In this document: piece after piece, positions 3,276 through 47,003 of the stretch
How positions within the stretch are numbered: the first letter of the stretch is position 1
Layout: each line of letters opens with the position of its first letter
IMG/VR virus record: IMGVR_UViG_3300020172_001601
Location: 124,001-188,000 of that record
Direction: 5' to 3' (one strand)
DNA length: 64,000 nucleotides
Notes under the pieces: generated by a model
What the model was told of the DNA's origin: nothing
Database searches by the model: none
What the model saw: only the letters and a program-made list of their open reading frames with translations
Program-made: the position numbers and the translations under genes

Positions 3276-3680
3276 ATGGAAAAGTTATCACCCGCAGTTC
3301 AAAAACTCATTGCTATCCGCACCAAGTTGGAAGACGAGCGGCATCAATTTGCCCTGAAGCATGGCTTTGCATACAAGCGGGCGCAGGACTTCAAAAGCTG
3401 CGTAGTCATCCGTTGGAAAACATCTCGGAAGAAATACGAAATCAATTATCCTCGTCTCGATGAGTATGGCAAAATAACCCATGAACTCTCGGAAAAGTAC
3501 GACCTGTACGTTGAGGAATATCCACTGCTTAGTGCGGACCTTCGATTGTTGAAGGCAGGCATTTACGTTTTCTCATCATGGGATTATCAGGCATGGGCCA
3601 TCCCAAATGAAAACAAGGAAATTCAGGACTATGTTCTGAGCAAGTTACCTAAATGGGTCAAAGTGAGTGTGAAGAAATGA
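3276..3680 (+). CDS. hypothetical protein
   Basis: ORF coupled by ATGA overlap to the next gene; start uncertain. Confidence 0.65.
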   Translation: MEKLSPAVQKLIAIRTKLEDERHQFALKHGFAYKRAQDFKSCVVIRWKTSRKKYEINYPRLDEYGKITHELSEKYDLYVEEYPLLSADLRLLKAGIYVFSSWDYQAWAIPNENKEIQDYVLSKLPKWVKVSVKK

Positions 3681-4963
3681 TTCGCCCTATTCCGCTATCT
3701 CATGGCGTTGGGTTTTTCTCAATGCAGCAATTGCCTCAATTTGCAGGCAAGTACCGTGAGGAAAATGTCGGTCGCTATTGGAACTACTATGTCACTCCAG
3801 AGTGCCAGGAATGGCCCGAAGCTGTGACGTATAAGGGTCCGTATGTAATCGACGGGTTCTCCCCAAACCTCAACAAGAGTCTGCACGTCGGGCATCTACG
3901 TCAATTGGCCTTGGCCAAGTCTTTGGAGAGCATTATGAACTTTGCTCAACCTAAGCCTAATGCCAAGTTCGTTTCCCTATTGGGAGCTTCACAAGGCGTT
4001 TTTCAATACGCTACTGAGCAACTGAATGGATGGTTCGATTTCTTGAACTTCCATCCAGAGTTGCACTATGACGTATTGATGCCACGAGATCAGGAGATCG
4101 TTCCTCGTTACAAAACCAAGGTGCCGGTCAAAGACCCTATTTCGACTGACATTAACGGCAAGCCTTTCGAGCATGAAGAAGAATGTGAAGTATGGGATGG
4201 TCCCAATGGGCCTGTAATCGTCGTTCGTTGGGATGGGCGTCCTTTGTATGCCTTCCAAGACATTGCCTTCTCGAAGGTCGTGGGGCCGACGCATTACATC
4301 ACTGGCACTGAGCAACAGGAGCATTTTGCAAACCTGGGGCTGGGTGACAAACACTTGCCTATGGGCCTTGTATTGGGCGCTGACGGCAAGAAGATGAAGT
4401 CTCGTACTGGCGATAGTGTCACGGCGAAGGAAGTGCTGGATCAGATTGTATCGCAGCTTGATCCGACACCTGAGCCGAACAAGCTGGCGTGGAACGTCTT
4501 GGCGTGGAACTTCCTTCACGTCGCTCGTTCCAAGAGCGTGAAATATACACCGCAAGAATGGACGAAGCCGGATGCTCCGGGCATGTATATTTCCTACACT
4601 TATGCCCGTCTGCAATCGGCATTGGAATGGAACGAAAAAGAAGACCACCGAGTTGGGTCGCTCCGTTGGCTTTGGAACATGGAAGGGTTGGGACTCGACA
4701 AAGGCGAGTTGACTCAATCCGATTCTGAATTGCTTGGTCTGGCAAATCAACATGCTTACGCATTGCAGCGTAGCATTGATTCTCTCGACCCGGCGATTTT
4801 GGCAAATTACGCTTATGATCTGGCTTCCAAGCTGGGTACGGCGTATCATGGGGAAAAGATCAAGGGTGGTCGCCCAGGGTTCAAGTATGCCCTGATTTGT
4901 GCTACGCTTCACCTTCGTTTGTGTATGCACCAACTCGGCATGTTTCCTTTGGAGAATATTTGA
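3677..4963 (+). CDS. argS: arginyl-tRNA synthetase-like protein (N-terminally reduced)
   Basis: class I HIGH (SPNLNKSLHVGHLR) and KMSKS (GKKMKSRTG) motifs; DALR-type YISYTYARLQS..PAILANYAYDLA..LGMFPLENI. Confidence 0.8.
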   Translation: MIRPIPLSHGVGFFSMQQLPQFAGKYREENVGRYWNYYVTPECQEWPEAVTYKGPYVIDGFSPNLNKSLHVGHLRQLALAKSLESIMNFAQPKPNAKFVSLLGASQGVFQYATEQLNGWFDFLNFHPELHYDVLMPRDQEIVPRYKTKVPVKDPISTDINGKPFEHEEECEVWDGPNGPVIVVRWDGRPLYAFQDIAFSKVVGPTHYITGTEQQEHFANLGLGDKHLPMGLVLGADGKKMKSRTGDSVTAKEVLDQIVSQLDPTPEPNKLAWNVLAWNFLHVARSKSVKYTPQEWTKPDAPGMYISYTYARLQSALEWNEKEDHRVGSLRWLWNMEGLGLDKGELTQSDSELLGLANQHAYALQRSIDSLDPAILANYAYDLASKLGTAYHGEKIKGGRPGFKYALICATLHLRLCMHQLGMFPLENI

Positions 4964-7185: not shown

Positions 7186-8112
7186 ATGGCAAACGTAATT
7201 AAAGAACTGTACGACAAGAGATTGACCAATCTCGGCGGTCATCGCTGGATTCCAGACAACATGCACTACATCACCATGATGGGTAGTGTGGCCTATGGTG
7301 TTTCAAACGACACGTCTGACACGGACATTTATTCCTTTTGTATTCCACCAAAGGAAGAATTGTTCCCGCATCTTCGTGGCGAAATCGTAGGCTTTGGTGA
7401 TGCCGTACACGCCAACAATAGATTCACCAATTACCAAGAACACCACATCAAAGATGTCGGTGCCGAGAAAGAATACGACCTCAACATTTACAACATTGTT
7501 GACTTCTTTCAGTTGGTGATGGAAAACAACCCTAACATGATCGACTCTCTGTTTACGCCCCAATGGTGCGTATTGCACAGCACTAGAGTCGGCCAGATGG
7601 TTCGAGAGCAGAGAAAGATATTTCTTCACCTGGGATCGTGGCACACTTTTAAGGGCTATGCTTATTCACAGCTAAAGAAGTGTGGGTCAAAGAAGCGAAC
7701 CGGGAAGCGAAAGCAAGTGGTAGACGAAATGGGCTTCGACCCGAAATTCGCTTACCATATTGTGAGAAATCTGAATGAAATCGAACAGATTCTCACAGAG
7801 GGCGATCTGGACCTACAGCGAAATAGAGAACAATTGAAGGCTATTCGCCGTGGAGAATGGTCGCTCGAACAGATAGAAGAATATTTTGAGCGGAAGGAAC
7901 TTGAGCTAGAAACTCTGTATAATGAGAATAAAGCCGGTTTACCTTGGGGGCCTAAACACGATGGTTTGCAAGAGAAAGTTAAGCAACTTCTCTTTCAGTG
8001 CCTCGAAGAACACTATGGATCGCTTGACAAATGTATTGTCAATCCAGATGCCGCAGTGATGGCTCTCCGGGAGGTTGGCGACGTTCTCGCAAAATACAGA
8101 AACCTTCTATGA
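7186..8112 (+). CDS. DNA polymerase beta superfamily nucleotidyltransferase (RlaP/Nuc-transf-like)
   Basis: GSVAYG..SDTDIY motif; NNPNMIDSLF; FKGYAYSQ; KFAYHIVR. Confidence 0.8.
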   Translation: MANVIKELYDKRLTNLGGHRWIPDNMHYITMMGSVAYGVSNDTSDTDIYSFCIPPKEELFPHLRGEIVGFGDAVHANNRFTNYQEHHIKDVGAEKEYDLNIYNIVDFFQLVMENNPNMIDSLFTPQWCVLHSTRVGQMVREQRKIFLHLGSWHTFKGYAYSQLKKCGSKKRTGKRKQVVDEMGFDPKFAYHIVRNLNEIEQILTEGDLDLQRNREQLKAIRRGEWSLEQIEEYFERKELELETLYNENKAGLPWGPKHDGLQEKVKQLLFQCLEEHYGSLDKCIVNPDAAVMALREVGDVLAKYRNLL

Positions 8113-19136: not shown

Positions 19137-20144
19137 GTGAACGATATTCGCATTTTTGGCCTGGGATCGAGCGTTGAATACACAGAGCAAGTATGCAGGG
19201 CGTTATCGTTGAAGCGGTCTGACCACAAAGAGACGTGGCAGGACGATGACGAGCCTTACGTTCTCTCCCAAGAGAATGTTCGAGGCTGTGACGTATTCAT
19301 CGTGCAGAGTTTGTACTCCTGTCACAAAGAGCGTCTGGCAGACAAGTTCCTGAAACTTCTGTTATTCGCTCGTTCTCTTCGTGACGCATCGGCCCGGCGT
19401 ATTACGCTTGTGTTGCCGTATTTCGCATTTCAACGTCAGGATCGAAAAACCGAGTCCAGAGCGCCGGTATACACCAAATACATCCCTGAAATTGTCGAGG
19501 GCCTACTTCGTCCCGATGACCGCATTTTGACCATTGATGCTCACAACCTGAGCGCATATCAGTCGGGTTTCCGGTTGATGCTCGATCACCTTGAGGCCAA
19601 GCCAGTTGTCTGTGACTGGTTCAGCAATACTGCTGCCCGTTTTTGGCCTGAAGTCGATCTCGATAATCTTTGTTTTGCTTCACCCGATGAAGGTGGCGTT
19701 AAGCGTGTTGGCTTCTATCGAAAACGTGTTCAGTCTCAGATGAAGATCGAGATCAGCACGGCATCGGTCTACAAAACCCATGAGGGAAAGCAGATCGAGG
19801 CGCACGGCGTGATGGGTAATGTCCAGGGTAAAGACGTGTTCTTGATTGACGACATGATCTCGTCTGGAACCACGTTGGTAAAAGCAACCGATGCCATTGA
19901 GAAGGAAGGCGGCAAGGTTCGAGCCGCTATTGCTACGCACGGTTTATTCGTCGGTAACGCCAATGAGCGTATAGGGTTACTGCAAGAGCGTGGCATCAAG
20001 GTTATCGTCACCGATACTGTCCACACCAATAAGTTGGACCCAAAGTTGCAGAAGTCGCTGGTGGTTATTCCAACCGCTCCACTAATCGGTGAAGCGATTC
20101 GGTGTATTCACAACGAAGAGTCTGTCAGCAAATTACTTTCCTGA
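19137..20144 (+). CDS. prs: ribose-phosphate pyrophosphokinase
   Basis: ENVRGCDVFIVQS, PYFAFQRQDRK, SPDEGGVKR, LIDDMISSGTTL, THGLF. Confidence 0.95.
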   Translation: MNDIRIFGLGSSVEYTEQVCRALSLKRSDHKETWQDDDEPYVLSQENVRGCDVFIVQSLYSCHKERLADKFLKLLLFARSLRDASARRITLVLPYFAFQRQDRKTESRAPVYTKYIPEIVEGLLRPDDRILTIDAHNLSAYQSGFRLMLDHLEAKPVVCDWFSNTAARFWPEVDLDNLCFASPDEGGVKRVGFYRKRVQSQMKIEISTASVYKTHEGKQIEAHGVMGNVQGKDVFLIDDMISSGTTLVKATDAIEKEGGKVRAAIATHGLFVGNANERIGLLQERGIKVIVTDTVHTNKLDPKLQKSLVVIPTAPLIGEAIRCIHNEESVSKLLS

Positions 20145-25821: not shown

Positions 25822-25951
25822 TGCAAAACGACTTGTGGCGAAAATGCTGGAAAAAGTTCGATTTACACGCCGCAATAACTGCGGTAGAATGAGATTAGGA
25901 AATTACAACAGCCACGGTTCTGGCTTTAGATCATTGAGAGGGGAAGAATTT

Positions 25952-27265
25952 ATGGCAAAGAGGACGACGACAAACACTCCGTTGTGTGACTACTGTGGAA
26001 AAACCAGCAAAGAAGCGGGACTTTTGGTGGAAAGCCCTGTCGCCGACCGTGAACAAAACGGTCGCCCGGCAGGGTCACGGGTTTTCATCTGTTCTGCCTG
26101 TGTTGAGCTATGCCAGACGATGGTGAAGCAGAAGAACCAAAAGAAGAGTGCTGGGGCGTCCTTGCCGAAGGAGGTTCCTACCCCACGAGAGATCGTTAGG
26201 TATTTGGACCAATACATCATTGGCCAAGAGCAAGCCAAGCGAACATTGGCGGTGGCTGTGTCGAATCACTATAAGCGTCTACGAGATGATGCTGATCGAC
26301 TGGAAAAGTTTGATCTCAACGATGATCTGGCCGAAACCACCATCGAAAAGAGCAATATTCTTCTGATCGGCCCTACGGGATCAGGCAAGACATTGCTCGC
26401 CAAGACGTTGGCAAAGATTCTTCAGGTGCCGTTTGCCATCGGTGACGCCACGACGTTGACGGAAGCTGGCTACGTCGGAGAAGACGTGGAGAACTTGGTG
26501 TTGAAACTGCTTCGAGAAGCAGATTTTGAGGTCGATGTAGCTCAAACTGGCATCATTTACCTTGATGAAGTGGACAAGATCGGAAAGACGAGCCAGAATG
26601 TCAGCATCACTCGTGATGTATCTGGCGAGGGTGTGCAGCAAGCGTTGCTGAAGATGCTCGAAGGAACGACCTGCAACGTGCCGCCGACTGGTGGGCGCAA
26701 GCACCCGGAGCAGCAATATATTCAGGTCGATACGACCAATATCTTGTTTATTGTTGGAGGCACGTTTGTTGGCCTCGAAGACATTATCAGCAAGCGTATT
26801 GGGCGAAAGTCTATGGGATTTGGCTCTGTCCGTGAAACACAGGAGGCCGAAGCCAAATCAGAATGGATTCTGGAGCATGTGACTGAAGACGACTTGGTTC
26901 ATTTCGGGTTGATTCCTGAACTGATTGGTCGCTTGCCGGTCATCACGCCTCTGAAGGGCCTGGACGAAGATGCTCTGGTTCAAGTGTTGACTGAACCGAA
27001 GGATGCTTTGGTGAAGCAATACAAGAAGCTGTTCCGATATGACAATGTGGGCCTGGAATTTACGCCTGAAGCACTGATGGAAATCGCCAAGACTGCTGCT
27101 AAGAAGGGTACTGGCGCTCGTGGGCTTCGCAGTGTCATCGAGAGCTTCATTACTGAAGTGATGTTTGATCTGCCGGAACATAGCGGTGAAGTCGTCACCA
27201 TTACCGACAAGATTGTTCGTGGAGAAGAAACTGTCGTCTTCCCCCAGAACAATAAGGCGGCATAA
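25952..27265 (+). CDS. clpX: ATP-dependent Clp protease ATP-binding subunit ClpX
   Basis: C4 zinc finger, [48 protein letters not shown]. Confidence 0.95.
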
Positions 27266-30432: not shown

Positions 30433-30684
30433 GTGATGGATAGTGTAGAACAAAAAGTAAAACAAACGATTTGTGATTGTTTGTGCGTCGAGTTGGACGC
30501 CATAGAGGATAATTCAGTTAGGTTAAGCGAACTGGAAGCAGACTCGCTTGACTTACTTGACCTTGAGTTTCAACTCGATAAGCAATTCGACGGCAAGTTG
30601 ATTAACGAAATGACCGTCTCTGTGGAGACGACGATTCAAGACGTAATCAACTTTGTCAGGACGGAAATCGGGCCGGTAGCTTAG
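30433..30684 (+). CDS. acpP: acyl carrier protein
   Basis: acidic 83 aa protein with the EADSLDLLDL phosphopantetheine site. Confidence 0.85.
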   Translation: MMDSVEQKVKQTICDCLCVELDAIEDNSVRLSELEADSLDLLDLEFQLDKQFDGKLINEMTVSVETTIQDVINFVRTEIGPVA

Positions 30685-30742
30685 TGACTAAAGCAGCTTG
30701 CTCATAACGAGTTGATCGTGGGTTTGAGTCCCACCCGGCCCA
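30670..30742 (+). tRNA. tRNA with anticodon CAT (probably Ile2), possibly degenerate
   Basis: GGGCCGG/CCGGCCC acceptor, GCTT/AAGC D stem, loop CTCATAA, GTGGG/CCCAC T stem; D-loop GG and TTC altered; no encoded CCA. Confidence 0.75.
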
Positions 30743-30756
30743 CTAGGAAAAATAAA

Positions 30757-34763: not shown

Positions 34764-35192
34764 ATGAGATTGTGGTCTTTGAATCCTGCTCTTTTAGACC
34801 CCAAAGGGCTTGTCGCATTGTGGCGAGAAGGGCTGCTGGCTCAAAATGTTTTGATGAACAAAACAAAGGGCTATAAGTTTCATCCTCAATTGGAACGATT
34901 CAAAAGAACAAATAATCCAGTGGCTTCGATTGATTTGTATTTAAGTTATGTTTTGGAAGAGTCCAGAAATAGAGGTTATTCATTCAACGCCTCTAAATTG
35001 AGTGCGAATGACACACAGCCTAAAATAGAAGTGACCATTGGACAAATGCTTTACGAGATAGAGCATTTGAAAAACAAGTTAAGACTTCGTAATGAGAAGT
35101 TTCTTGACAAGATACCGAGTGCATTGGCCGATTGCGTTCATCCAATTTTTCAGTTGGTTCCTGGCGACGTAGAACCCTGGGAAAAGGTTTGA
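34764..35192 (+). CDS. pyrimidine dimer DNA glycosylase / endonuclease V family
   Basis: MRLWSL..LDPKGLVALWREGLLAQ..KGYKFHPQLERF. Confidence 0.9.
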   Translation: MRLWSLNPALLDPKGLVALWREGLLAQNVLMNKTKGYKFHPQLERFKRTNNPVASIDLYLSYVLEESRNRGYSFNASKLSANDTQPKIEVTIGQMLYEIEHLKNKLRLRNEKFLDKIPSALADCVHPIFQLVPGDVEPWEKV

Positions 35193-35230
35193 GTTTTACG
35201 TTTTGACGTTTTTGTGGTATGGTTAGTATC

Positions 35231-35890
35231 ATGAGCCATTTTCACAAATATCCTCGAACGTATCATCTGCCGTGGAGTCCTGGTGGGACTTCTGATGATC
35301 GCACATTGCCCAATGTGAAGCACTTCGAGGGTTTGGAAATCGTCGTCACGGAGAAGTTGGACGGAGAAAACACGTCCATGTACTCCGATCACATTCACGC
35401 ACGATCTCTTGATTCCAAGCACCATCCTTCTCGAACTTGGGTCAAGGTGTTGCACGGCCAGTTAAGTCATGAACTTCCTCCTGGTTGGAGGATTTGTGGC
35501 GAAAACGTGTATGCCTTGCATTCAATTCAATACACCAAGCTGGAAGGCTATTTCTACGTTTTCGGAATATACGACGACAAGAATCAATGCTTGTCGTGGG
35601 ACGAAACTGTGGAATATGCAACCATGCTCAATCTGCCGGTTGCCCCGGTCCTATATCGTGGGCCTTGGAATGAGGCAAAGGTCAAAGCCTGCTGGACAGG
35701 CATTTCTACTGCATCCCCAGGCGATCAACAGGAAGGCTATGTTCTGCGAGTGGCGCAGACATTCCCGTATGACGCTCAAGATGATGGGCTATTTTCACAA
35801 TACACTGCCAAATATGTCCGGGCCGAGCATGTCCAGACTGATGAGCATTGGCTTGAAAAGCCCGTGGTGCCGAACTTGCTAAGGAAATAA
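35231..35890 (+). CDS. RNA ligase family protein (Rnl2-like adenylation domain)
   Basis: KYPRTYHLPWSPG, TEKLDGEN, ICGEN, EGYVLR, AKYVR. Confidence 0.85.
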   Translation: MSHFHKYPRTYHLPWSPGGTSDDRTLPNVKHFEGLEIVVTEKLDGENTSMYSDHIHARSLDSKHHPSRTWVKVLHGQLSHELPPGWRICGENVYALHSIQYTKLEGYFYVFGIYDDKNQCLSWDETVEYATMLNLPVAPVLYRGPWNEAKVKACWTGISTASPGDQQEGYVLRVAQTFPYDAQDDGLFSQYTAKYVRAEHVQTDEHWLEKPVVPNLLRK

Positions 35891-36309: not shown

Positions 36310-36768
36310 ATGAGTGCCTTGATCGAGTATGTTCAGAATCACACAGATCGCAGCGTATGTCGTTGCGGCAAGTGCATTGACGCAGGCGAGAATAAGCCTG
36401 TGGAAAAAAGCCAATGGGACGTGGTTGAACTTGTTGAACCGCCACATACGGTCAATATGTTCTTCTTCGACGTGTCCGCAGTCGGCAACCCTACCGCTGA
36501 AGAGTTTGTTCGTCTGACGAATGAGCATAAAGGCGCATTCTGTGATGCCGATCCGCTGGACGGTGGCGAACACGGATATATGGAGTTGGGCGGGTGGATC
36601 GGGGACCAAGGACTTGCCATGCAATATATGGCCCTTGGGAAAATACTCGGTCTGTGGCAAGTCATGCACCCCGGCATGATTCTGGATGTGAACGATCCGG
36701 CTCAGAAGCAAATGGCCGATCAGATGGCCGGAGCCGGGATGGTGTCGATCCTGGGTAAGCAGTCTTGA
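36310..36768 (+). CDS. hypothetical protein
   Basis: AGGAG SD. Confidence 0.7.
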   Translation: MSALIEYVQNHTDRSVCRCGKCIDAGENKPVEKSQWDVVELVEPPHTVNMFFFDVSAVGNPTAEEFVRLTNEHKGAFCDADPLDGGEHGYMELGGWIGDQGLAMQYMALGKILGLWQVMHPGMILDVNDPAQKQMADQMAGAGMVSILGKQS

Positions 36769-36913
36769 CTTTACAATCAGACTTTTTCGTGGTAAAAATA
36801 TCCACGTCAAAAGCCGGATATTCGATATATTCGGCTAAAGTCTGATTGTGGTCTGCCGATATAACTTTCACCAGCAACTACAAACTACTTTCACCGAACT
36901 AGGAACCACTTAT

Positions 36914-38539
36914 ATGTCGAAGAAACTTGGAAAATCTGCCTATCCTGCTGGTCATGGCCCGAATGACTTTCAATGCTTCGGCCCGCCTGCTCTTGAAGAT
37001 GGCAACTTCGACACCTGCAAGATCGCCGATATGGGATCATTCTCGCAGGAAGAAAAGGACTCCAACAAGTATTACCACGCCTCTGTGGTGAAGTCCAAAA
37101 TCAGTGGCACTTTCTACACCTACTTCGAGTGGGGCCGAGTCGGTGCTTCTTCGCCTCAATTCCAAATGATTGAGTGTGCCAACGAAGCTGAAGCGCAGCG
37201 TGAATTCGCCGCTCAGTGTCATGAGAAGAACGACAAGCGTGGCGTATGGTCCACGGTTGCTGGCCTTCGCACTCTCACCGCCAAGCCGGGCAAAGACGTG
37301 TATCTGGTTCGTCAGTTGACGACCCGCAGCACTGGTCTGCCTGATGCCAAAACCATCAAGTATGTCGATCCCAATACTCCGAAGAAGCCTGATCCTAAAG
37401 CGGCTTCCGGTTCTGCTGGCGTTGTGAAGTCGGCTGCAAAGAAGGCTGATACTCACACCAGTCGATTGCTACAAGACCTGATTGGTGGAACGATCAAATA
37501 CACCCGTTCGGCGATGGCCGACAATAGCCTACCTACGCAGACGGCTATTGACCAAGCCCGCACCATTCTCACCGAGGCTCAGAAGCGTGTTGGCACTGTG
37601 GGTGATGACTTAGACGACCAGATTGGCGACAAAGAACTTCGGGTATATTCGTCCGAATTGTATCGTCGCATTCCGAAGGTCAAGGCAGTCGGTACGCCGG
37701 ACAGCGTGTGGATTCTGAGCGGCAACAATATCCTTTCCTGGCAACAGGACTTGGATGCCTTCGAGTCGGCATTGACTGGCCAAGCCCAAGTCGAAACTGA
37801 CAGTGAAACCGATCCGTTCCACGGTCTGCCTCTTCACATGGAGTGGATCGACCCCAAGAGCGATCTTGGCAAATTCCTCACCTTCTGGTGGCCGAAGGCG
37901 ACGGCAAATCGTCACGGTCATATTGGGACGATGAAGATCAAGAATCTGTGGAAGGTGGATCGTCACGGTGATGACGAGAAGTTCACCAAGACGCAGGATA
38001 AGATTTATTCCGAAATCGGCGGGGCCAAGATCAGCGAACGTCCGCTGTTCCAGCCTAGCGAACGACATGACGTTGACCCTAAGCGTCGTGAAGTATTCAG
38101 TGGTTCCAATACAGCCTTGTTGTTCCACGGAACTCGCTCCGTCAACGTGAAGGGCATTTTGGAGAAGTCACTGTTGCTTCCGAAGCAACTGGTCGGTGTC
38201 GCCATCAATGGTGCTATGTTCGGGCCGGGACTGTATTGGGCTGATGACTGGAAGAAGTCGGCGGGATATACGTCTCTCCGTGGCTCGATCTGGTCGGGTG
38301 GTGGCGGTTCGGTTGCAGGTCGTGCAGCGTTCATGTTCGCTGCTGACGTGACTGTTGGCGAGCCTCACGTTGCTCCTGGGCCTCGTGGTTATACTGCCCC
38401 GCCGAAGGGTACTCACTGTATCTTTGGTATGGGTCGCAACCACGGCAAGAAGCAATACAGTGGCGTCGAGAACAACGAATGGATCGTGTTCCAGAATACA
38501 CAAAGCCGTCTCAAATACCTTTGTGAATTTGAGACGTAA
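36914..38539 (+). CDS. poly(ADP-ribose) polymerase-like protein (WGR, regulatory and catalytic domains)
   Basis: FEWGRVG; SSELYRRIP; LLFHGT..GAMFGPGLYWAD..KSAGY..NNEWIVF (H-Y-E triad). Confidence 0.9.
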   Translation: MSKKLGKSAYPAGHGPNDFQCFGPPALEDGNFDTCKIADMGSFSQEEKDSNKYYHASVVKSKISGTFYTYFEWGRVGASSPQFQMIECANEAEAQREFAAQCHEKNDKRGVWSTVAGLRTLTAKPGKDVYLVRQLTTRSTGLPDAKTIKYVDPNTPKKPDPKAASGSAGVVKSAAKKADTHTSRLLQDLIGGTIKYTRSAMADNSLPTQTAIDQARTILTEAQKRVGTVGDDLDDQIGDKELRVYSSELYRRIPKVKAVGTPDSVWILSGNNILSWQQDLDAFESALTGQAQVETDSETDPFHGLPLHMEWIDPKSDLGKFLTFWWPKATANRHGHIGTMKIKNLWKVDRHGDDEKFTKTQDKIYSEIGGAKISERPLFQPSERHDVDPKRREVFSGSNTALLFHGTRSVNVKGILEKSLLLPKQLVGVAINGAMFGPGLYWADDWKKSAGYTSLRGSIWSGGGGSVAGRAAFMFAADVTVGEPHVAPGPRGYTAPPKGTHCIFGMGRNHGKKQYSGVENNEWIVFQNTQSRLKYLCEFET

Positions 38540-38774: not shown

Positions 38775-39569
38775 ATGAGCAATGCAAGTCTGGTCCAGGT
38801 CGTCGAGACGGTCGTGGATGAAAAGGTTCAAGCCGGTGAATTGTTCACCGCCCATGATGTTACCCTCGAAGTCCGTCAGCGTGGCCATCGGGCCGGTCAC
38901 GGCGAAGTCCGTGATGCTGTTCACGACTATTATGGTCGTGGTGGATTGGGCGTTGCATATTCTCGCACCAATATCTCGGTGCCGGGCGGCAACCCATATC
39001 TGTACCATCGTGGTGCAGATGATCCTTCGACATATCAGAACATTCGTGGTGGCGGCAACGTCAATGTTCCCAATCCTGCAACGATTACGGTTCCTCCGGT
39101 CGGCCAGAGCGGGGACGATGATGACGACGACGACGGGGCTGCACAAGCTGTGACTATTCCAGCCAGTCTTTTGGGGAGTCTAACTTCAGTTCCTCAGAAT
39201 TCGGTAGCTGGTATTGCAGTTTCCGGCGTGAACGGTCATGCTCGCAACAGTGCGACACGCACCAGCAACAAGCCGGGCAATACGAAAGCCCGCACAGTTG
39301 ACGGACGTGGAACGCTGAGTATCCCGGCTCCGATTATTCGGCAGCTTGGATTCAAGCCTCGCCAAAAAGTATACGCAGTGGCGGCGACCAACGGTGTGGA
39401 TATTGTTGACACGAAGCCTCCTGCATCTGCCGTATATGGAACGTATACGGTGGACGATCACGAACAGGTTCGTCTGACCCAGGCACTATTGCAACGTGCT
39501 GGTATTGCTGGTAAGCAATACGATGTTGAGCAAGCAAACAATAAGGTGGTAGTCAAACTTTCTAAGTAG
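38775..39569 (+). CDS. hypothetical protein with C-terminal AbrB/SpoVT-like repeats
   Basis: RTVDGRGTLSIPAPIIRQLGF; YTVDDHEQVRLTQALLQRAGI. Confidence 0.6.
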   Translation: MSNASLVQVVETVVDEKVQAGELFTAHDVTLEVRQRGHRAGHGEVRDAVHDYYGRGGLGVAYSRTNISVPGGNPYLYHRGADDPSTYQNIRGGGNVNVPNPATITVPPVGQSGDDDDDDDGAAQAVTIPASLLGSLTSVPQNSVAGIAVSGVNGHARNSATRTSNKPGNTKARTVDGRGTLSIPAPIIRQLGFKPRQKVYAVAATNGVDIVDTKPPASAVYGTYTVDDHEQVRLTQALLQRAGIAGKQYDVEQANNKVVVKLSK

Positions 39570-39683: not shown

Positions 39684-41351
39684 ATGAGCGATGAAGTCAT
39701 TACACTGTCGAGGGACGAATTCGAGGAAATCAAGGGCCAACTGGTTTTCCTTGATGCCGAATTGTCCCGCCTTATGGCACAACCTTTGGTGTACGCCACG
39801 GTTGTCAAGGCAGACAACAAGTTCAATCTGGAGGTTTTCGAGCAGGGCGACCGAATGCTCGTGATCGACAAAGAACTTCGCAAGCAGAAGAAGTTCTACG
39901 GCAAGATCGCATCTGCCGGTGTCGATGAAGACGGTTGGGTGATTCTGGAATATCCTACGGGCGGGCGTGACCGATTGAATATCGGCCTCAAGACCGAACT
40001 ACCGCAGGTTAAGTTGCTCGGCAAGGACGACGGCATGAATGTCGTCATCACCTTCGACGGGAAGCTGTTCGAGGTTCACGGTCTGCCCGGTGTCTTCTTC
40101 AAGCCTTCCGAAAACGTGAAGGTTGACATGGAGACGAAGCAGATTCACTCCAGCACGGGCGTCAGCAGCGCCGGTGACGTGGTTTACATCAAGTCCATCG
40201 TGGACGAGAATCACGTTGAAGTCGAAAGCAATGGCAGCAATCGTGTTGTCATCTTCGGCCTCGATCAGAAGATCGAACCAAGTGACCGTGTGATGTTGGA
40301 TAATTCCAACACGGTTATCCTTCGGGTGTTGGAACGTGACGGCAAGGATCGTTTCAACCTGACGGAAAATTCCGACACACAATGGTCTGATATTGCCGGG
40401 TTGGATGACGCCAAGGAACAACTGATCGAGGCGTTGGAAACTCCGTACAAGAACCCGGAGATTTACAAGTTCTACGGCATGGCCCCTCCGAAGGGTGTCC
40501 TGTTGTATGGACCGCAGGGTTGTGGGAAGACTTTGACCGCCAAGGCAGCAGCGGCTTCGCTGGCTCGCACACACGGTTCGGAGAACTTCCAGTCGGGATT
40601 CATCTACGTCAAGGGACCGGAACTCCTGTCCAAGTGGGTTGGTCAGACCGAACAAGAAATTCGTGGTCTGTTCACCCGTGGTCGGGAACACTTCCAGAAG
40701 CACGGCTATCCGGCCTTGCTGTTCATTGACGAAGCTGATGCCCTTCTGCCGATGAGAGGGACTGGCAAGAGCAGCGACGTGGAGAACACCATCGTCCCGC
40801 AGTTCTTGTCGGAAATGGACGGGTTGGAAGCGTCGGGTGTGATGGTTCTGTTGGCTACAAACCAACCGAAGCGTCTGGACCCAGCGGTTGTTCGTGAAGG
40901 TCGTATAGACCGTCACGTTAAGATCAGCCGTCCGAACGAAAAGAATGCCATCGAATACTTCCGCATTCACATGAGAGGTATGCCGTTGGCGAAGGGTGTG
41001 GAACCGGAAGAAGTGGCGAACCTCGCTGCTGCTGAAATCTTCCATGCTCAACGGGCGCTTTACCGTGTGACTCACCGTCAGACGGCAGAAATCTTCCGTC
41101 TGGCTGACGCCGTGACGGGAGCGATGATTGCTGGAGTGGTGGCGCAGGCCAAGTCCATCGCCATGAAGCGAGACTTGGCAAAGGGTGGCAAGCCGAAGGG
41201 TGTGTTGCCTGAAGACTTCGCTGTTTCGGTGAACAACCACTACATTCAGCACGCCGACCTGAACGCCACGTTCGATCTGGAAGACTTCTGTGATCGACTC
41301 GGCTTCGACCGGAAGTCGGTGAATGTCGAGAAGTTGGCTGTTGCCAAGTAA
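39684..41351 (+). CDS. ARC/Mpa-like AAA+ ATPase
   Basis: N-terminal coiled coil and OB-like region; KGVLLYGPQGCGKT, KGPELLSKWVG, FIDEAD, SSDVENTIVPQFLSEMDG, LDPAVVREGRID, VTGAMI. Confidence 0.85.
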   Translation: MSDEVITLSRDEFEEIKGQLVFLDAELSRLMAQPLVYATVVKADNKFNLEVFEQGDRMLVIDKELRKQKKFYGKIASAGVDEDGWVILEYPTGGRDRLNIGLKTELPQVKLLGKDDGMNVVITFDGKLFEVHGLPGVFFKPSENVKVDMETKQIHSSTGVSSAGDVVYIKSIVDENHVEVESNGSNRVVIFGLDQKIEPSDRVMLDNSNTVILRVLERDGKDRFNLTENSDTQWSDIAGLDDAKEQLIEALETPYKNPEIYKFYGMAPPKGVLLYGPQGCGKTLTAKAAAASLARTHGSENFQSGFIYVKGPELLSKWVGQTEQEIRGLFTRGREHFQKHGYPALLFIDEADALLPMRGTGKSSDVENTIVPQFLSEMDGLEASGVMVLLATNQPKRLDPAVVREGRIDRHVKISRPNEKNAIEYFRIHMRGMPLAKGVEPEEVANLAAAEIFHAQRALYRVTHRQTAEIFRLADAVTGAMIAGVVAQAKSIAMKRDLAKGGKPKGVLPEDFAVSVNNHYIQHADLNATFDLEDFCDRLGFDRKSVNVEKLAVAK

Positions 41352-41383: not shown

Positions 41384-41423
41384 CTGCCCGGTCATCGTGG
41401 GGATGACCGGGCAGTTGTTGTTT
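41384..41423 (+). terminator. intrinsic terminator
   Basis: ctgcccggtcatc/gatgaccgggcag stem. Confidence 0.7.
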
Positions 41424-41456
41424 ACAGAACTCGTTTTTTGGGGTAGAATCCTCATC

Positions 41457-42863
41457 ATGTTCACTTTATCGGAAGCATACGAAGCATTAAATGGTCACGA
41501 CGAGTTTGCCGTAAAGGTTTACGACGGCAAGGTTTCGTTCGACTACATCGTTATCTTTCCTGGGTCTTTCGACGCTACCGATGATGAAATCCGACACCGT
41601 GCTTATCTCCTGTGGGAGCAAGCTGGTGGTCCGGTCGTGGACTCTGCACAATTCTGGTTTCAGGCAGAGCGAGACATTAAGCGTTTTGCTCATCTTCGTC
41701 GCAATTTTCGTGGCGTTACGTTTGACGTAGCGACCGGCGAAATGATCTCGCTGCCTCTTCACAAGTTTTTCAACGTCAACCAAATTCCAGAAACTCAATA
41801 TGATGTTATCAAGCATCATGATGCTGTTATCTATGAGAAGATGGATGGGACGATGATTCACTTCTTCCTACACAATGGGAAGTTAGAAGCTGCAACCTGC
41901 CGTTCGACTCATCACCCGCTCGCACATGAGGCGTTGGCGTTGGCGAAGAAGAACCGTATTGATGGGATGATTGTTGATACCATCAAGAACGGTTGGACTC
42001 CAATCTTTGAATATGTTGCTCCACACAATCAAGTTGTGGTTCAATATGCCGAGCCACGTTTGGTGCATCTGGTATCCCGTGAACGCAAGTCAGGAAAGTA
42101 TCATTACGATGATTCTTTTCCTGATAAGGCACGTCGTTTTGAATTCAAGTTTGGTCAGGTTTTCAATAACCTCGATCATACTGAGTTCGAGGGATATGTT
42201 TGTCATTTACCAAACATGGTCGTCAAGGCAAAGACTCCTTGGTACATGGAACGTCACCGGGCTGTTGATGCTTTGATGCGCCCGGCGTACAAGTTATACA
42301 AAATCGTATTCGATGGGTTGATGGACGACTTGATCGCCATCGCCACCGAGCCGTACAAGCCAGCGCTTCGTAAGGTATACGAAGAGGCTCAACGTGATCT
42401 TCTGAACGAGAAGAAGCGTGTAGAGGAACAATTTGCTGAGGCTGTGGAACTTTCCGAGAAGGCTCCGACTCTAACGGACGATCCAAATCCGTTGGCTGAT
42501 TTAGAGAAGGAAATCAATCTCCTGAAGGACCAGGGCAAGCGATTGGAGGCCATCAAGCGGGTTCGTGACTTCACGGGCCTTGGCTTGAGTGAAGCAAAGT
42601 CTTACGTTGAACGTGGTGTGTGGCCCCACGGTTTTATTCGACGTGATGAACAAGAGATTGAGGCTCGTCGGCTTATTCGCACCAAGGGCAGCTTCGCTGA
42701 TCTGGCTCGTGCAAAATATCCTGATGACTTCAACCTCATCATGGCTTTGTATCAAGGGCGTGATCCTAGCGATGGGATCAAAGAGCGGTTGATGGAGGTA
42801 TATCGTGTGAAATACCCTCAAAAACTTTACGCCAAACTTGATGATAACCATGAAGATGGGTAA
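41457..42863 (+). CDS. T4 Rnl1-like RNA ligase with DUF2934-like and L7/L12-CTD-like insertions
   Basis: RGVTFD..LPLHKFFN, YEKMDGTMI, TPIFEY, EGYV, KAKTPWY; EIRHRAYLLWEQAG..FWFQAERDI; LEAIKRVRDFTGLGLSEAKSYVE. Confidence 0.85.
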   Translation: MFTLSEAYEALNGHDEFAVKVYDGKVSFDYIVIFPGSFDATDDEIRHRAYLLWEQAGGPVVDSAQFWFQAERDIKRFAHLRRNFRGVTFDVATGEMISLPLHKFFNVNQIPETQYDVIKHHDAVIYEKMDGTMIHFFLHNGKLEAATCRSTHHPLAHEALALAKKNRIDGMIVDTIKNGWTPIFEYVAPHNQVVVQYAEPRLVHLVSRERKSGKYHYDDSFPDKARRFEFKFGQVFNNLDHTEFEGYVCHLPNMVVKAKTPWYMERHRAVDALMRPAYKLYKIVFDGLMDDLIAIATEPYKPALRKVYEEAQRDLLNEKKRVEEQFAEAVELSEKAPTLTDDPNPLADLEKEINLLKDQGKRLEAIKRVRDFTGLGLSEAKSYVERGVWPHGFIRRDEQEIEARRLIRTKGSFADLARAKYPDDFNLIMALYQGRDPSDGIKERLMEVYRVKYPQKLYAKLDDNHEDG

Positions 42864-43167: not shown

Positions 43168-43836
43168 ATGTCAGAAATCAAAATCAATAGCGTGACAAAG
43201 GCGACCGACCTCCGTTGGCTCAATCTGTATAACGTCGATTATACATCGAAAGACGGAAAGCAAGGTCAATGGACATTCGCCAGTCGCAAGACTCCACAAC
43301 CGGCAGGCTCGCCCCTCGTGGCCGATGCTGTTGTGATTATCCCACTGCTGAAGGATGGTCGCAAACGGAAGCTGGTCAGCATCCGGGAATTCCGTATCCC
43401 CCTGGGAGACTATGAATATGGTTTCCCGGCTGGTCTTTATGACCATAACGAAACAGCCGAAGCTGTCGCCAAGCGTGAGTTGAAAGAAGAAACAGGACTC
43501 AAGCTGACAAAGGTTCTTTACGTCAGCCCGCCGTGTGTTTCTTCGGCTGGTCTTTCTGATGAGTCGGTAGTGTATGTCGTGTGTGAATGCACTGGAGAAG
43601 TCAGCAGTGCTGGCACTGAAGGATCGGAAGACATTAAGGTTGGACTGCTCGATATTGACGGGGTTCGGGCGCTTCGCCAGTCTCCCAACAAGATTTCGGC
43701 CAAGGCTATTACCTTTCTGCTCATGTTCGATGGGATGAACAAGATTGCATGGCCGAAGCACCTTCGCCAAGAACAACCCAAGAAGGCGAAAAAGGCAAAG
43801 CCGGAAGCTCTACAAACGGCTGATCCTGTGGTATGA
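43168..43836 (+). CDS. Nudix hydrolase, ADP-ribose pyrophosphatase (NudF)-like
   Basis: EFRIPLG..YGFPAGLYDHNETAEAVAKRELKEETG, SAGLSDE. Confidence 0.85.
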   Translation: MSEIKINSVTKATDLRWLNLYNVDYTSKDGKQGQWTFASRKTPQPAGSPLVADAVVIIPLLKDGRKRKLVSIREFRIPLGDYEYGFPAGLYDHNETAEAVAKRELKEETGLKLTKVLYVSPPCVSSAGLSDESVVYVVCECTGEVSSAGTEGSEDIKVGLLDIDGVRALRQSPNKISAKAITFLLMFDGMNKIAWPKHLRQEQPKKAKKAKPEALQTADPVV

Positions 43837-45806: not shown

Positions 45807-45996
45807 ACCTTGCAACCCTGACCATAATGGCGAATGTTTAGTGTGTGATGGCTGGCTGTCACATTGCGCACTAGACAGATTGCGAGCGGGCGACTTCAAG
45901 TATGAAACCTTGGATGAACTGCTGGTAATGTTCAAGGATTTCTTAACAGAAGACGAAGTTCGCAATTTACGAACACAATACGGAACAAACAAATGA
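45793..45996 (+). CDS. hypothetical protein
   Basis: small Cys-containing ORF. Confidence 0.55.
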   Translation: MDANKPCNPDHNGECLVCDGWLSHCALDRLRAGDFKYETLDELLVMFKDFLTEDEVRNLRTQYGTNK

Positions 45997-47003
45997 TTAC
46001 CCTAAAAGATAAAGTCCGAGGCAATTTCCTGGGTGTCGCTATTGGCGATGCACTCGGCAAGCCAGTTGAAATGTGCAAACCTCAGCATATTGCTGAGAAG
46101 TATGGTCGCATTGAAGACTACCAAAACTGTAGTTCTCACAAGTATTTCGAGAACGACCATAAAGGCACCACGACCGACGACTGGCAGCTTACCAAGGCCG
46201 TTGCTCGTGCCATGATTACGACCGGCAAGTTCGATCTGGACGAGATTGCTGTTGAACACGGTAAGGAATTCGCAATCAGCGTTCGTGGCTGGGGCGGCTC
46301 AACCAGAGAAGCTGTTGCTCGTATTGTTGAAGGAATTCACTGGAAAGAGGCTGGCAAGACCACCGAGAAGAATCGAGGCTTGGGCAACGGCGTTTCCATG
46401 AAGGCGTCACCAGCGGGGCTTTATATGGCCCTGACGAATCCAAGCTGTGACAACCCGCCTTGGGACGATCATGTGAAGAATATCGCTGATATGGCGATTA
46501 TGACGCACTACACGAGTATTGCAGTGACGAGTGGTCTGGCTCATGCCTTCGCCACGCTGAAGTGTTTCAGTGTCACCCCTGAAACCTTCGACCCTGATTC
46601 GTTCGTGAATGTCGTTATTGGCGCTGCTCAGATCGGACGCCAGTATTGTCCTGGGACGCTCAATGACGATATGCAGGTTCGTTTTGAGCGATTGAAGAAG
46701 CCATATACCCCGCAGGGCATTATTGACCCAGATGAGTTCGGCGGTGGCTCCTGCTATGTCTACGACAGCTTGCCGTTTACATACGCATGGTTCCTTCGCA
46801 ATCCACAAAGCATCGAAAGTCTGTATGACTGTGTGAGTGCTGGTGGTGACGCTGACAGTAATGGCTCGATGCTGGCTGGGCTATTGGGAGCATTGCACGG
46901 TGCAAGCATTTTCCCGGATCATCTGGTTGATGGGCTGAAGAATAAAGACGAGGTTCTGGAGATCGCCGACCAGTTTTACGAGAAATTTGCCAAGTCGAAG
47001 TGA
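45993..47003 (+). CDS. ADP-ribosylglycohydrolase (DraG/ARH family)
   Basis: AIGDALGKPVE, TTDDWQL, GNGVSMK, GGDADSNGSMLAGLLGA. Confidence 0.92.
   Translation: MITLKDKVRGNFLGVAIGDALGKPVEMCKPQHIAEKYGRIEDYQNCSSHKYFENDHKGTTTDDWQLTKAVARAMITTGKFDLDEIAVEHGKEFAISVRGWGGSTREAVARIVEGIHWKEAGKTTEKNRGLGNGVSMKASPAGLYMALTNPSCDNPPWDDHVKNIADMAIMTHYTSIAVTSGLAHAFATLKCFSVTPETFDPDSFVNVVIGAAQIGRQYCPGTLNDDMQVRFERLKKPYTPQGIIDPDEFGGGSCYVYDSLPFTYAWFLRNPQSIESLYDCVSAGGDADSNGSMLAGLLGALHGASIFPDHLVDGLKNKDEVLEIADQFYEKFAKSK

Follow-up and report, generated by a model that had tools for sequence, protein, structure and literature searches.

Enzymes of the PARP1/2 type are central to eukaryotic DNA-damage signalling, and their prokaryotic and viral relatives are known almost solely as database entries. 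The bacterial WGR-PARPs of Herpetosiphon aurantiacus and Clostridioides difficile CD160 keep the catalytic residues H-Y-E, in some cases together with a regulatory domain, and have been reported to be active (PMC4245714, PMC5966428). Phage PARPs have been listed as well: PMC4245714 names homologues in Aeromonas phage Aeh1 and Cellulophaga phage phi4:1, PMC7824862 does so for jumbo phages, for example XacN1, and PART/PARP is among the most frequent viral ADP-ribosyltransferase (ART) families (PMC9503650). Here we describe a PARP1/2-type gene at positions 36914-38539 of a 64,000-base stretch of DNA (the window), which comprises bases 124001-188000 of the 340,341-base IMG/VR virus record IMGVR_UViG_3300020172_001601 (CheckV completeness estimate 69%). 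We report its domain architecture, its conserved active site, its synteny, the homology of its partner gene and the linkage of its relatives to retrons, and we propose an activity, an activating ligand, targets and a purpose for it. By analogy with PARP1 and PARP2, we judge that there is a slightly better than even chance that the gene encodes an active, nucleic-acid-gated and reversible PARP1/2-type ART of a giant freshwater phage, serving as a damage- or attack-responsive switch. A previous interpretation made from the letters of the window (the sequence-only reading) had treated an enzyme of this kind as a rarity in phages and had set it apart from the class of T4 Alt and Mod. The separation stands, because the phage protein has the H-Y-E PARP fold; the rarity was an incomplete account, as phage PARPs were already on record. 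It had further proposed, as an inference, a nucleic-acid-activated polymerase for DNA repair, host takeover or defence interference, and it did not extend to the winged-helix partner, the downstream genes for an ADP-ribosylglycohydrolase and a Nudix hydrolase, or the relation to retron clusters of Planctomycetota, all of which are described below.

The other described system to which this gene has to be compared is the type XIII retron (the Mx162/Mx65/Ne144 group), which consists of a reverse transcriptase (RT), a SWIM/DEDE protein and a "WGR-like" HEAT/ARM protein (Mestre et al. 2020, PMC7736814), and 26 examples of which were counted in Planctomycetota by a 2026 retron survey (PMC13712802). 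Neither of these two papers mentions PARP, WGR-PARP or ADP-ribose, a literature search for a retron with a PARP returned nothing relevant, and no enzymatic output of type XIII retrons is named in the literature consulted.

Domain architecture and conservation of the phage PARP

The open reading frame (ORF) of the PARP lies on the + strand, is open from a GTG at 36848, contains an ATG at 36914 and ends with a TAA stop codon at 38539. We took ATG 36914 as the start because homologues align from residue 1 of the resulting 541-aa protein, with M1, K4 and L5 nearly invariant. The gene and its domains are located as follows.

36914-38539, + strand: PARP1/2-type ADP-ribosyltransferase gene (P0001), 541 aa, identified by Pfam WGR and PARP, the AF2 model, Foldseek and VIA
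36935-37363, + strand: WGR domain, residues ~8-150 (Pfam WGR at 44-108; superposes on PARP1)
37364-37444, + strand: flexible Lys/Ser/Pro-rich linker, residues ~151-177 (predicted local distance difference test score, pLDDT, <50 at 160-173)
37436-37825, + strand: helical regulatory (HD) domain, residues ~175-304, with helices at 180-200, 209-229, 240-252 and 273-295
37826-38536, + strand: ART catalytic domain, residues ~305-541, with H405, Y441, E522, G406, K448, S449 and Y452

The order WGR, HD, ART, which had been proposed in the sequence-only reading, is confirmed by two Pfam matches and a structural superposition. The Pfam WGR model matches residues 44-108 (E 3.5e-11, 43.5 bits, cut-off 22) and the Pfam PARP catalytic model residues 335-540 (E 5.7e-20, 72.1 bits, cut-off 26.7), while in PHROGs the C-terminal part of the phage PARP falls in a family labelled "polymerase". 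The HD domain was not detected by Pfam PARP_reg and aligned weakly at the profile level (independent E-value 0.007), and it was recognized by superposition on PARP1. Comparison of a predicted structure with PARP1 was one of the checks that the sequence-only reading had named, and the model indeed superposes on PARP1. This alignment-based AlphaFold (AF2) model has a mean pLDDT of 85.2 and a predicted template modelling score (pTM) of 0.82, with low confidence confined to the linker at 160-173 and a loop at 424-434. Its best Foldseek matches are WGR-plus-catalytic chains of human PARP1 and PARP2 on DNA breaks (E ~2e-23). In VIA-align, residues 175-541 of the model align with PARP1 662-1007 (HD and ART) at Z ~25, covering ~310 of 350 residues with a root-mean-square deviation of 3.0 A, and residues 8-541 align with PARP1 536-1007 (WGR, HD and ART; chain 4dqy_C) over 405 residues. 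The structural match to PARP4 nearly equals that to PARP1 (Z 24.9 versus 25.4). That the linker 151-177 might be an automodification region is only a guess.

The catalytic residues lie in the motifs LLFHGTR (H405, 38126-38128), PGLYWAD (Y441, 38234-38236) and ENNEWIV (E522, 38477-38479), and none of the three varies among 37 aligned homologues of 57-90% identity; the same holds for G406, K448, S449 and Y452, which we take as the predicted equivalents of NAD+-site residues. In the WGR motif W73-G74-R75 (37130-37138), G74 and R75 are invariant and W73 is conserved in at least 90%. A profile of the phage-family alignment matches PARP1 chains at E 1e-24, with the WGR, helical and catalytic regions as three collinear pieces, and it pairs the phage triad with LLWHGSR, GIYFAD and YNEYIVY of PARP1, in agreement with the catalytic residues that had been picked out earlier at FHGT, GLYWA and NNEW. 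In the same profile alignment the phage family has a gap of ~22 residues relative to the long loop that precedes the catalytic Glu of PARP1. From sequence and model together, the phage protein appears to belong to PARP/ARTD clade 1 (PARP1/2/3-like), as it has an H-Y-E ART domain, a WGR domain and, by structure, an HD domain.

This PARP family is abundant in giant phages, full-length (WGR, HD and ART) and under clear selection. More than 816 sequences fell below E 1e-3 among the candidates scored, many of them on contigs of 0.3-0.67 Mb, and an exhaustive search gave 1,435 cluster representatives below E 1e-3, of which 75 were below 1e-30. The DNA of the window itself recurs in metagenomes from freshwater and sediment. 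Among GenBank phages, the 595-kb uncultured phage LR756511.1 is the best match and the sole one over the full length (59% identity); together with the origin of the window in a virus record, this supports the phage setting given earlier for the gene. Cultured jumbo phages of Klebsiella, Xanthomonas and Stenotrophomonas were matched over ART or HD plus ART alone, at 25-38% identity, and a megablast search of the PARP region against GenBank phages returned no match.

The 145-nt gap upstream of the PARP gene contains an 87-nt structured element with a promoter-like site inside it.

36767-36853, + strand: structured element, in which a perfect 13-nt inverted repeat (36773-36785/36837-36849) closes two small hairpins
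36770-36799, + strand: promoter-like site TTTACA-18-AAAAAT, 9/12, inside the structured element

The RNA fold of the element has a predicted energy of -39.6 kcal/mol (z -4.59 versus shuffles). The element is conserved just in a 98% relative; in a ~91% relative 226 other bases take the place of part of it, and it is absent in phage locus L003 (a 673-kb contig, PARP 72% identical), and does not match the bacterial retron RNA profile described below. The suggestion in the sequence-only reading that the gene has its own promoter at 36770 is not supported: the site scores 9/12 and is the one such site in the region, compared with a mean of 2.0 in shuffles, its hexamers are absent from L003, and the second of them is partly replaced in the ~91% relative. 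The phage encodes its own sigma factor, and the sigma-70 consensus may therefore be the wrong yardstick for this site. Two short upstream blocks that L003 also has (GGCTAAAGTC and TAACTTTCA) are repeated in the window no more often than expected by chance. In three RNA-labelled runs, contigs of the ~91% relative span the upstream ORF, the PARP gene and the start of the gene that follows it.

The winged-helix partner and its link to type XIII retrons

Directly downstream of the PARP gene lies a gene for a 264-aa protein, the most likely start of which is ATG 38775.

38775-39569, + strand: partner protein, with a winged helix, an acidic linker and an MraZ-like double AbrB/SpoVT module (AF2, Foldseek, Pfam)

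In its AF2 model, an N-terminal domain (residues 1-90) with the helix/strand pattern of a winged helix and a confidently folded, β-rich C-terminal domain (175-264), both with pLDDT >90, are separated by a disordered, acidic linker (~93-170) that contains a run of Asp. Foldseek relates the N-domain to the winged-helix DNA binders PadR, Fur and BlaI, and the C-terminal half to MraZ, a doubled AbrB/SpoVT module, with modest E-values in both cases (best 8.6e-3 for the latter). The Pfam MazE_antitoxin model matches at E 6.5e-4 and 20 bits, below its cut-off of 24.7. In some relatives of the partner, P0286 among them (29.2 bits, cut-off 27), a FitA-like ribbon-helix-helix (RHH) domain takes the place of the AbrB-like module; AbrB-like and RHH modules alike bind DNA and are characteristic of antitoxins. 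With the N-domain as query, 41 close relatives were recovered, and since at least 15 of them could be matched to PARP homologues by the size of their longest contig, the partner and PARP genes travel together. Complex prediction for the PARP and the partner winged helix (residues 1-105) gave a score of 0.00, which is no answer and is evidence neither way. Neither the PARP nor the partner gene matches any defence-system model in PADLOC.

Outside phages, a scan of cellular genomes, one genome per prokaryotic species, identified 38 loci with PARPs that are 38-60% identical, the closest relatives being at 50-60% identity. All of them are labelled Planctomycetota (mostly Pirellulaceae and Gemmataceae) except two contigs of one metagenome-assembled genome (MAG) labelled Woesearchaeota. 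One locus belongs to a cultured isolate, Neorhodopirellula pilleata Pla100, and another to a closed chromosome of 7.8 Mb. The cluster in N. pilleata is located as follows.

L035 681-10123: retron-PARP cluster of N. pilleata Pla100, with its non-coding RNA (ncRNA) at L035 3914-4118

Its genes are, in order, those for an ADP-ribosylglycohydrolase (ARH), a HEAT/ARM protein, a SWIM protein, an RT, the PARP and a macro-domain protein, and three of them match PADLOC type XIII retron models (HEAT-ARM_XIII 3e-160, SWIM_XIII 1e-183 and RT_XIII 2e-154). The order HEAT/ARM-SWIM-RT-PARP is found in about 25 of the 38 loci, with ARH upstream in 11 and Macro downstream in 8, and the genes are closely spaced (SWIM to RT 8-30 nt; RT to PARP mostly 7-160 nt). 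The HEAT/ARM protein matches just the HEAT part of the PADLOC WGR_XIII model (profile positions 245-529 of 973), and the sole WGR domain found in the cluster is on the PARP. Retron-PARP clusters also occur in L029, L030, L033, L034, L036, L038, L040-L042, L044, L047, L052, L056, L057 and L059.

A conserved structured RNA of ~220 nt lies in the ~300-nt gap that separates the HEAT/ARM and SWIM genes. Its outer arms are complementary to each other and surround small conserved hairpins as well as one long hairpin, which varies in sequence and keeps its pairing. In the fold of the alignment, 26 of the 61 predicted pairs show compensatory changes, and a profile of this RNA matches every retron-linked locus with enough flank (E 1e-43 to 1e-64), including five loci outside the training set. 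Because this covarying ncRNA has the layout expected of an msr-msd RNA, the Planctomycetota clusters look, from their sequences, like genuine retrons. Rfam at gathering thresholds found tRNAs alone in the window and in three bacterial loci. As one copy of the cluster resides in the cultured N. pilleata Pla100, it is directly testable.

Several cellular loci differ from this arrangement or add to it. In a 4.03-Mb Gemmataceae contig (L002/L029 11631-12166), a gene for a PemK-family toxin, itself preceded by a partner of 65 aa, lies on the opposite strand directly downstream of the retron-linked PARP, which suggests a defence-island-like setting. In the closed Pirellulaceae chromosome OZ247499.1 (L054 7497-9608), a 703-aa PARP homologue with a histone-H1-like Lys/Ala-rich N-terminal tail adjoins an SMC gene, with neither a retron gene nor a winged-helix gene nearby. 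L050 and L051 (107 and 106 kb, binned as Candidatus Woesearchaeota) carry an identical PARP copy, 51% identical to that of the window, and no retron genes; they may be phage contigs wrongly binned with an archaeal MAG.

The winged helix is what connects the two contexts. The PADLOC RT_XIII model begins to match the Planctomycetota RT at residue 237 and thus does not cover its first 90-110 residues, and in about 25 Planctomycetota loci this N-terminus is homologous to the winged helix of the phage partner (~35-51% identity by tblastn), with F24, H42, R64, Y77, H78 and Y87 invariant. In bacteria the winged helix is thus joined to an RT, in phages to a DNA-binding module of the antitoxin type. 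In the phage genome, of which the record is ~69% complete, the RT query matches the winged helix alone (RT residues 6-117), and the catalytic and C-terminal part of the RT has no match in any phage locus or in the 340-kb record. Likewise, the HEAT/ARM and SWIM/DEDE proteins have no tblastn match in the phage genome or the phage loci, and the ncRNA profile finds nothing there (best E 1). Since all other parts of the retron are unmatched in phages, the unit common to phage and bacterium is the PARP plus the winged helix.

We constructed a quick tree of 59 PARPs by maximum likelihood and placed its root on nine distant members of the family. One nested set of 20 rows (86%) contains nearly all of the retron-linked PARPs, its innermost 16-row clade having 99% support, and several deep phage lineages surround this set; the PARP of the window groups with its 98% and 72% relatives. 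Both directions of transfer between phage and bacterium were considered, and we name no donor, because the support of the root is 82%, the outgroup branches are long, and a single phage origin is compatible with the well-supported branches. Because the phage PARP is shared near-exclusively with Planctomycetota, we infer that this is the likeliest host phylum of the phage, which gives a host lead for uncultured giant phages.

The phage lineages are not uniform in their neighbourhoods. In an 11-member clade there is no winged-helix gene within 10 kb of the PARP; four of its loci have a NADAR gene near the PARP, and phosphatase and SpoU methylase genes recur in it. A second deep phage clade (L010 4692-20287; L012, L013, L016, L017, L019 and L023) has a distinct conserved neighbourhood of NADAR, metallophosphoesterase, histidine phosphatase, SpoU methylase, glycosyltransferase and adenylosuccinate synthetase genes, with neither a winged-helix partner nor an ARH within 10 kb. 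Across lineages, the PARP is paired with one or other ADP-ribose-removing enzyme, namely ARH, NADAR or Macro.

Tentatively, and as a possibility that we ourselves hold to be rather doubtful, the PARP and the winged helix could be the effector-adaptor module of a previously undescribed, PARP-armed type XIII retron, which giant phages carry without the retron, either as its evolutionary source or as a captured piece with which to defuse or imitate the host system. In the retron version, the fusion of winged helix and RT would make multicopy single-stranded DNA (msDNA), the WGR domain of the PARP would read the msDNA, and the output would be an ADP-ribosylation that Macro and ARH reverse. If this were true, PARP-type ADP-ribosylation would be a weapon used by both phage and host, and type XIII retrons would have their first proposed enzymatic output.

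Neighbouring genes and the proposed ADP-ribosylation switch

The PARP gene is preceded, in order, by genes for a sigma factor, an HD phosphohydrolase, a pyrimidine-dimer glycosylase, an RNA ligase and two small ORFs, and is followed by those for the 264-aa partner, an AAA+ ATPase, a T4 Rnl1-type RNA ligase, a Nudix protein, an ARH and an RNA-ligase-like protein. Farther upstream are genes for an RNA-repair nucleotidyltransferase (RlaP), a metallophosphoesterase and a ClpX-like ATPase. The neighbours with assigned functions are the following.

34764-35192, + strand: pyrimidine-dimer DNA glycosylase (Pfam Pyr_excise 2.9e-19)
35219-35890, + strand: RNA ligase (Pfam RNA_ligase 6e-34)
39684-41351, + strand: AAA+ ATPase (Pfam AAA 4.2e-33; weak proteasomal-ATPase match, Prot_ATP_ID_OB_C 0.002; IetA/TRIP13-like in PADLOC)
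41397-42863, + strand: T4 Rnl1-type RNA ligase (Pfam RNA_lig_T4_1 1.5e-16; syntenic in L003)
43168-43836, + strand: NUDT5-like Nudix protein of the ADP-ribose/ADP-sugar pyrophosphatase type (Pfam NUDIX 3.3e-11)
45993-47003, + strand: ARH/DraG-family ADP-ribosylglycohydrolase, candidate eraser (Pfam ADP_ribosyl_GH 1.4e-45)

The best solved relatives of the Nudix protein are human NUDT5 ADP-sugar pyrophosphatase structures (E 1.8e-15), and the nearest solved relatives of the ARH are MJ1187 and DraG. Locus L003 keeps the order sigma factor, RNA ligase, PARP, partner, AAA+ ATPase, Rnl1, Nudix and ARH, and its copy of the AAA+ ATPase is 68% identical. An ARH gene lies within 10 kb of the PARP in phage loci L003, L006, L007, L008, L009 and L020. 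From the presence of the PARP, the ARH and the NUDT5-like Nudix, syntenic in L003, the phage is therefore predicted to encode a putative writer, an eraser and a disposal enzyme for free ADP-ribose. The ARH is the only eraser found in the 340-kb record: no Macro domain and no microbial-type poly(ADP-ribose) glycohydrolase (PARG) were found in it, the control for the latter being positive in D. radiodurans, whereas the search for eukaryote-type PARG was made without a valid control. A phage supply line for NAD+ was considered and rejected, as a phosphoribosyl pyrophosphate (PRPP) synthetase is present but no NAMPT or NAPRTase was found in the record.

The window also contains a fragmentary arginyl-tRNA-synthetase-like protein (3653-4963), the RlaP nucleotidyltransferase (7186-8112), the PRPP synthetase (19137-20144) and the ClpX-like ATPase (25835-27265). 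Besides a tRNA-Met (30670-30743), there are two tRNAs with a CTA anticodon, of the amber-suppressor type (Pyl according to ARAGORN), at 58011-58084 and 58708-58778, owing to which recoding of TAG was weighed. We used the standard code throughout, because TAG stops 21 of the 93 ORFs of the window, the coding density under this code is 92%, and mixed stops follow a short Gp23-like ORF. There is no sign of recoding within the window. The short ORF (962-1219, 85 aa) matches the major-capsid profile of T4 Gp23 over positions 1-55 alone (54.8 bits), and because mixed stops close the frame downstream of it, it seems to encode an independent mini-protein that carries an N-terminal capsid motif, and not to be a disrupted capsid gene.

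In the switch that we favour, the WGR domain would bind a nucleic-acid end or an unusual nucleic-acid structure, as in PARP1 and PARP2, and this binding would relieve the block of the helical domain on the NAD+ site, so that the H405-Y441-E522 centre could transfer ADP-ribose onto the PARP itself or onto other targets. The DraG/MJ1187-like ARH would strip the modification, the NUDT5-like Nudix would degrade the released ADP-ribose, and the 264-aa partner would probably regulate, restrain or direct the PARP. Of the retron cluster, at the end of which this pair is found in Planctomycetota, the phage would retain just the effector-plus-adaptor half, and the pair of genes, amid RNA- and DNA-repair genes, would most likely act during infection as a damage- or attack-responsive ADP-ribosylation switch. 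A response of this kind is suggested because the PARP sits among RNA ligases, phosphoesterases and a glycosylase for ultraviolet damage.

Several points weigh against this picture. Throughout the family the activity is predicted from homology, and binding between the PARP and its partner is predicted from gene linkage. Eleven phage loci, all of one clade, have no winged-helix partner within 10 kb. The triad does not prove polymer synthesis, and the fold of PARP4, a mono-transferase, fits almost as well as that of PARP1; the loop that leads up to the catalytic Glu falls ~22 residues short of its PARP1 counterpart, and Pfam PARP_reg fails to detect the helical domain of the phage protein. The record is ~69% complete, and its missing third could hold other erasers or the retron parts that appear to be absent. 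Finally, the contigs of the ~91% relative from RNA-labelled libraries do not demonstrate transcription.

The fit of PARP4 and the short loop bear on the chemistry. An H-Y-E triad is necessary and not sufficient for poly(ADP-ribose) synthesis, and sequence does not decide between mono- and poly-transfer. The protein may accordingly not be a polymerase at all, being either strictly mono-ADP-ribosylating or an inert scaffold or nucleic-acid binder, a possibility that is a minority one in our estimate and yet has to be taken seriously. PARP3 and PARP4 are mono-transferases although they retain H-Y-E, PARP4 ranks second among the structural matches, and the loop before the Glu is short. However, tankyrases, which also match the profile, have a short loop and make polymer, and an inert protein would hardly be expected to keep the triad and the NAD-site residues invariant in so many lineages. 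The remaining alternatives concern the purpose of the enzyme rather than its chemistry, and all four are compatible with the core of the switch that we favour.

The first of these is mimicry as a counter-defence, in which the phage winged helix would imitate the N-domain of the RT and so hold off the effector or the trigger of a host (probably planctomycete) retron XIII-PARP system, the phage ARH and Nudix would erase the marks made by the host PARP, and the phage PARP would be a captured passenger or a tool against competitors. The winged helix is specifically common to the retron RT and the phage partner, the phage is without the RT catalytic part, the ncRNA and the SWIM and HEAT/ARM genes, the C-terminal modules of the partners are antitoxin-type DNA binders (AbrB/MraZ-like or FitA RHH), and the ARH is the sole eraser found in the phage record. 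In other retron types, moreover, the RT-msDNA complex restrains a toxic effector. We nevertheless regard this purpose as unlikely, since the PARP active site is invariant across deep phage lineages, which indicates that the phage needs the enzyme itself, and in the literature consulted no part in defence is shown for type XIII retrons, whether they include a PARP or not; the host is deduced from gene sharing, and the binding of PARP and partner is predicted from linkage.

A further proposal is that the enzyme modifies nucleic acids, so that DNA or RNA ends or bases would be marked, protected or blocked in conjunction with the RNA ligases and phosphoesterases and released by ARH or NADAR. The PARP is surrounded by three RNA-ligase-family genes, RlaP, HD and metallophosphoesterases and the pyrimidine-dimer glycosylase, and PARP1-3 can ADP-ribosylate the termini of DNA strand breaks in vitro. 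The second phage clade pairs its PARP with NADAR, histidine phosphatase and SpoU methylase genes, and NADAR releases ADP-ribose from macromolecular conjugates in DarT-like systems (PMC9503650). However, the sequence contains nothing that separates protein from nucleic-acid acceptors, ARH/DraG enzymes are best known to act on protein-linked ADP-ribose, and co-location in a giant phage genome is a weak sign of a common pathway, and we consider this purpose to be quite improbable.

Equally improbable, in our view, is a toxin-antitoxin-like or exclusion module, in which a PARP made toxic by NAD+ consumption or protein modification would be kept in check by the partner as antitoxin and autorepressor, for superinfection exclusion or addiction: the tight layout of an enzyme followed by a small protein with an AbrB/MazE-like or RHH module and a second domain, the PemK toxin pair beside one bacterial copy, and the precedent of ART toxins with neutralising partners (DarT-DarG and DraT-DraG, as cited in PMC9503650) speak for it, but the WGR and helical domains already give autoinhibition in PARP1/2-type enzymes, the gene lies amid repair and metabolic genes of a lytic-looking giant phage rather than in a mobile toxin-antitoxin islet, and a large phage clade has no such partner nearby, the binding itself being argued from linkage.

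Comparison with known systems

As far as the searchable literature shows, what is new here is an abundant family of full WGR-HD-ART proteins in giant phages, its winged-helix partner, its ARH and Nudix companions, and the type XIII retron linkage of its nearest cellular relatives. The phage family offers a tractable model for the WGR/HD gate outside eukaryotes, and its context adds a candidate dedicated partner, a complete putative set of enzymes to write, erase and recycle ADP-ribose, and the link of a PARP to type XIII retrons.

Compared with the C-terminal half of human PARP1 and PARP2 (PDB 4dqy, 7s6h and 6x0l), the phage protein has the same domain order, fold and W-G-R motif, and the triad and NAD-site residues align. 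It differs from them in its low identity (~17-22%), in having no zinc fingers and no BRCT domain, in the Glu loop that is shorter by ~22 residues, and in its phage setting with an ARH as the eraser found and a winged-helix partner that has no counterpart in PARP1.

The T4 enzymes Alt, ModA and ModB are likewise phage NAD+-using enzymes that modify macromolecules, this activity being predicted in the present case. However, they belong to the R-S-E ART clade (PMC9503650) and are without a WGR or helical domain, whereas the PARP of the window matches PARP-family models alone. The phage PARPs and PARTs listed before (Aeh1, phi4:1, XacN1 and Klebsiella phage FBKp34) all have a PARP-type H-Y-[ED] domain and come from large phages; among them and their like, XacN1, Xoo-sp13 and CM1 match the PARP of the window over ART alone (~387-540, 35-38% identity), and Klebsiella phages match it over HD and ART (216-540, 25% identity).

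In type XIII retrons a WGR domain is a recurring component, as it is in the PARP clusters of Planctomycetota. In the latter, however, it is the PARP that carries the WGR domain and not the HEAT/ARM protein, and an additional winged helix forms the N-terminus of the RT, whereas the phage has no matches to the RT proper, the ncRNA, or the SWIM/DEDE and HEAT/ARM proteins. Relative to bacterial reversible systems of the PARP-PARG type, the phage record has an ARH, with no Macro and no microbial PARG found in it. The bacterial WGR-PARPs have been described as sporadic single genes or as members of PARP-PARG sets, and these descriptions set the phage family apart from them: unlike those proteins, the PARP family of giant phages and Planctomycetota is abundant and is tied to a retron cluster or to a winged-helix partner.

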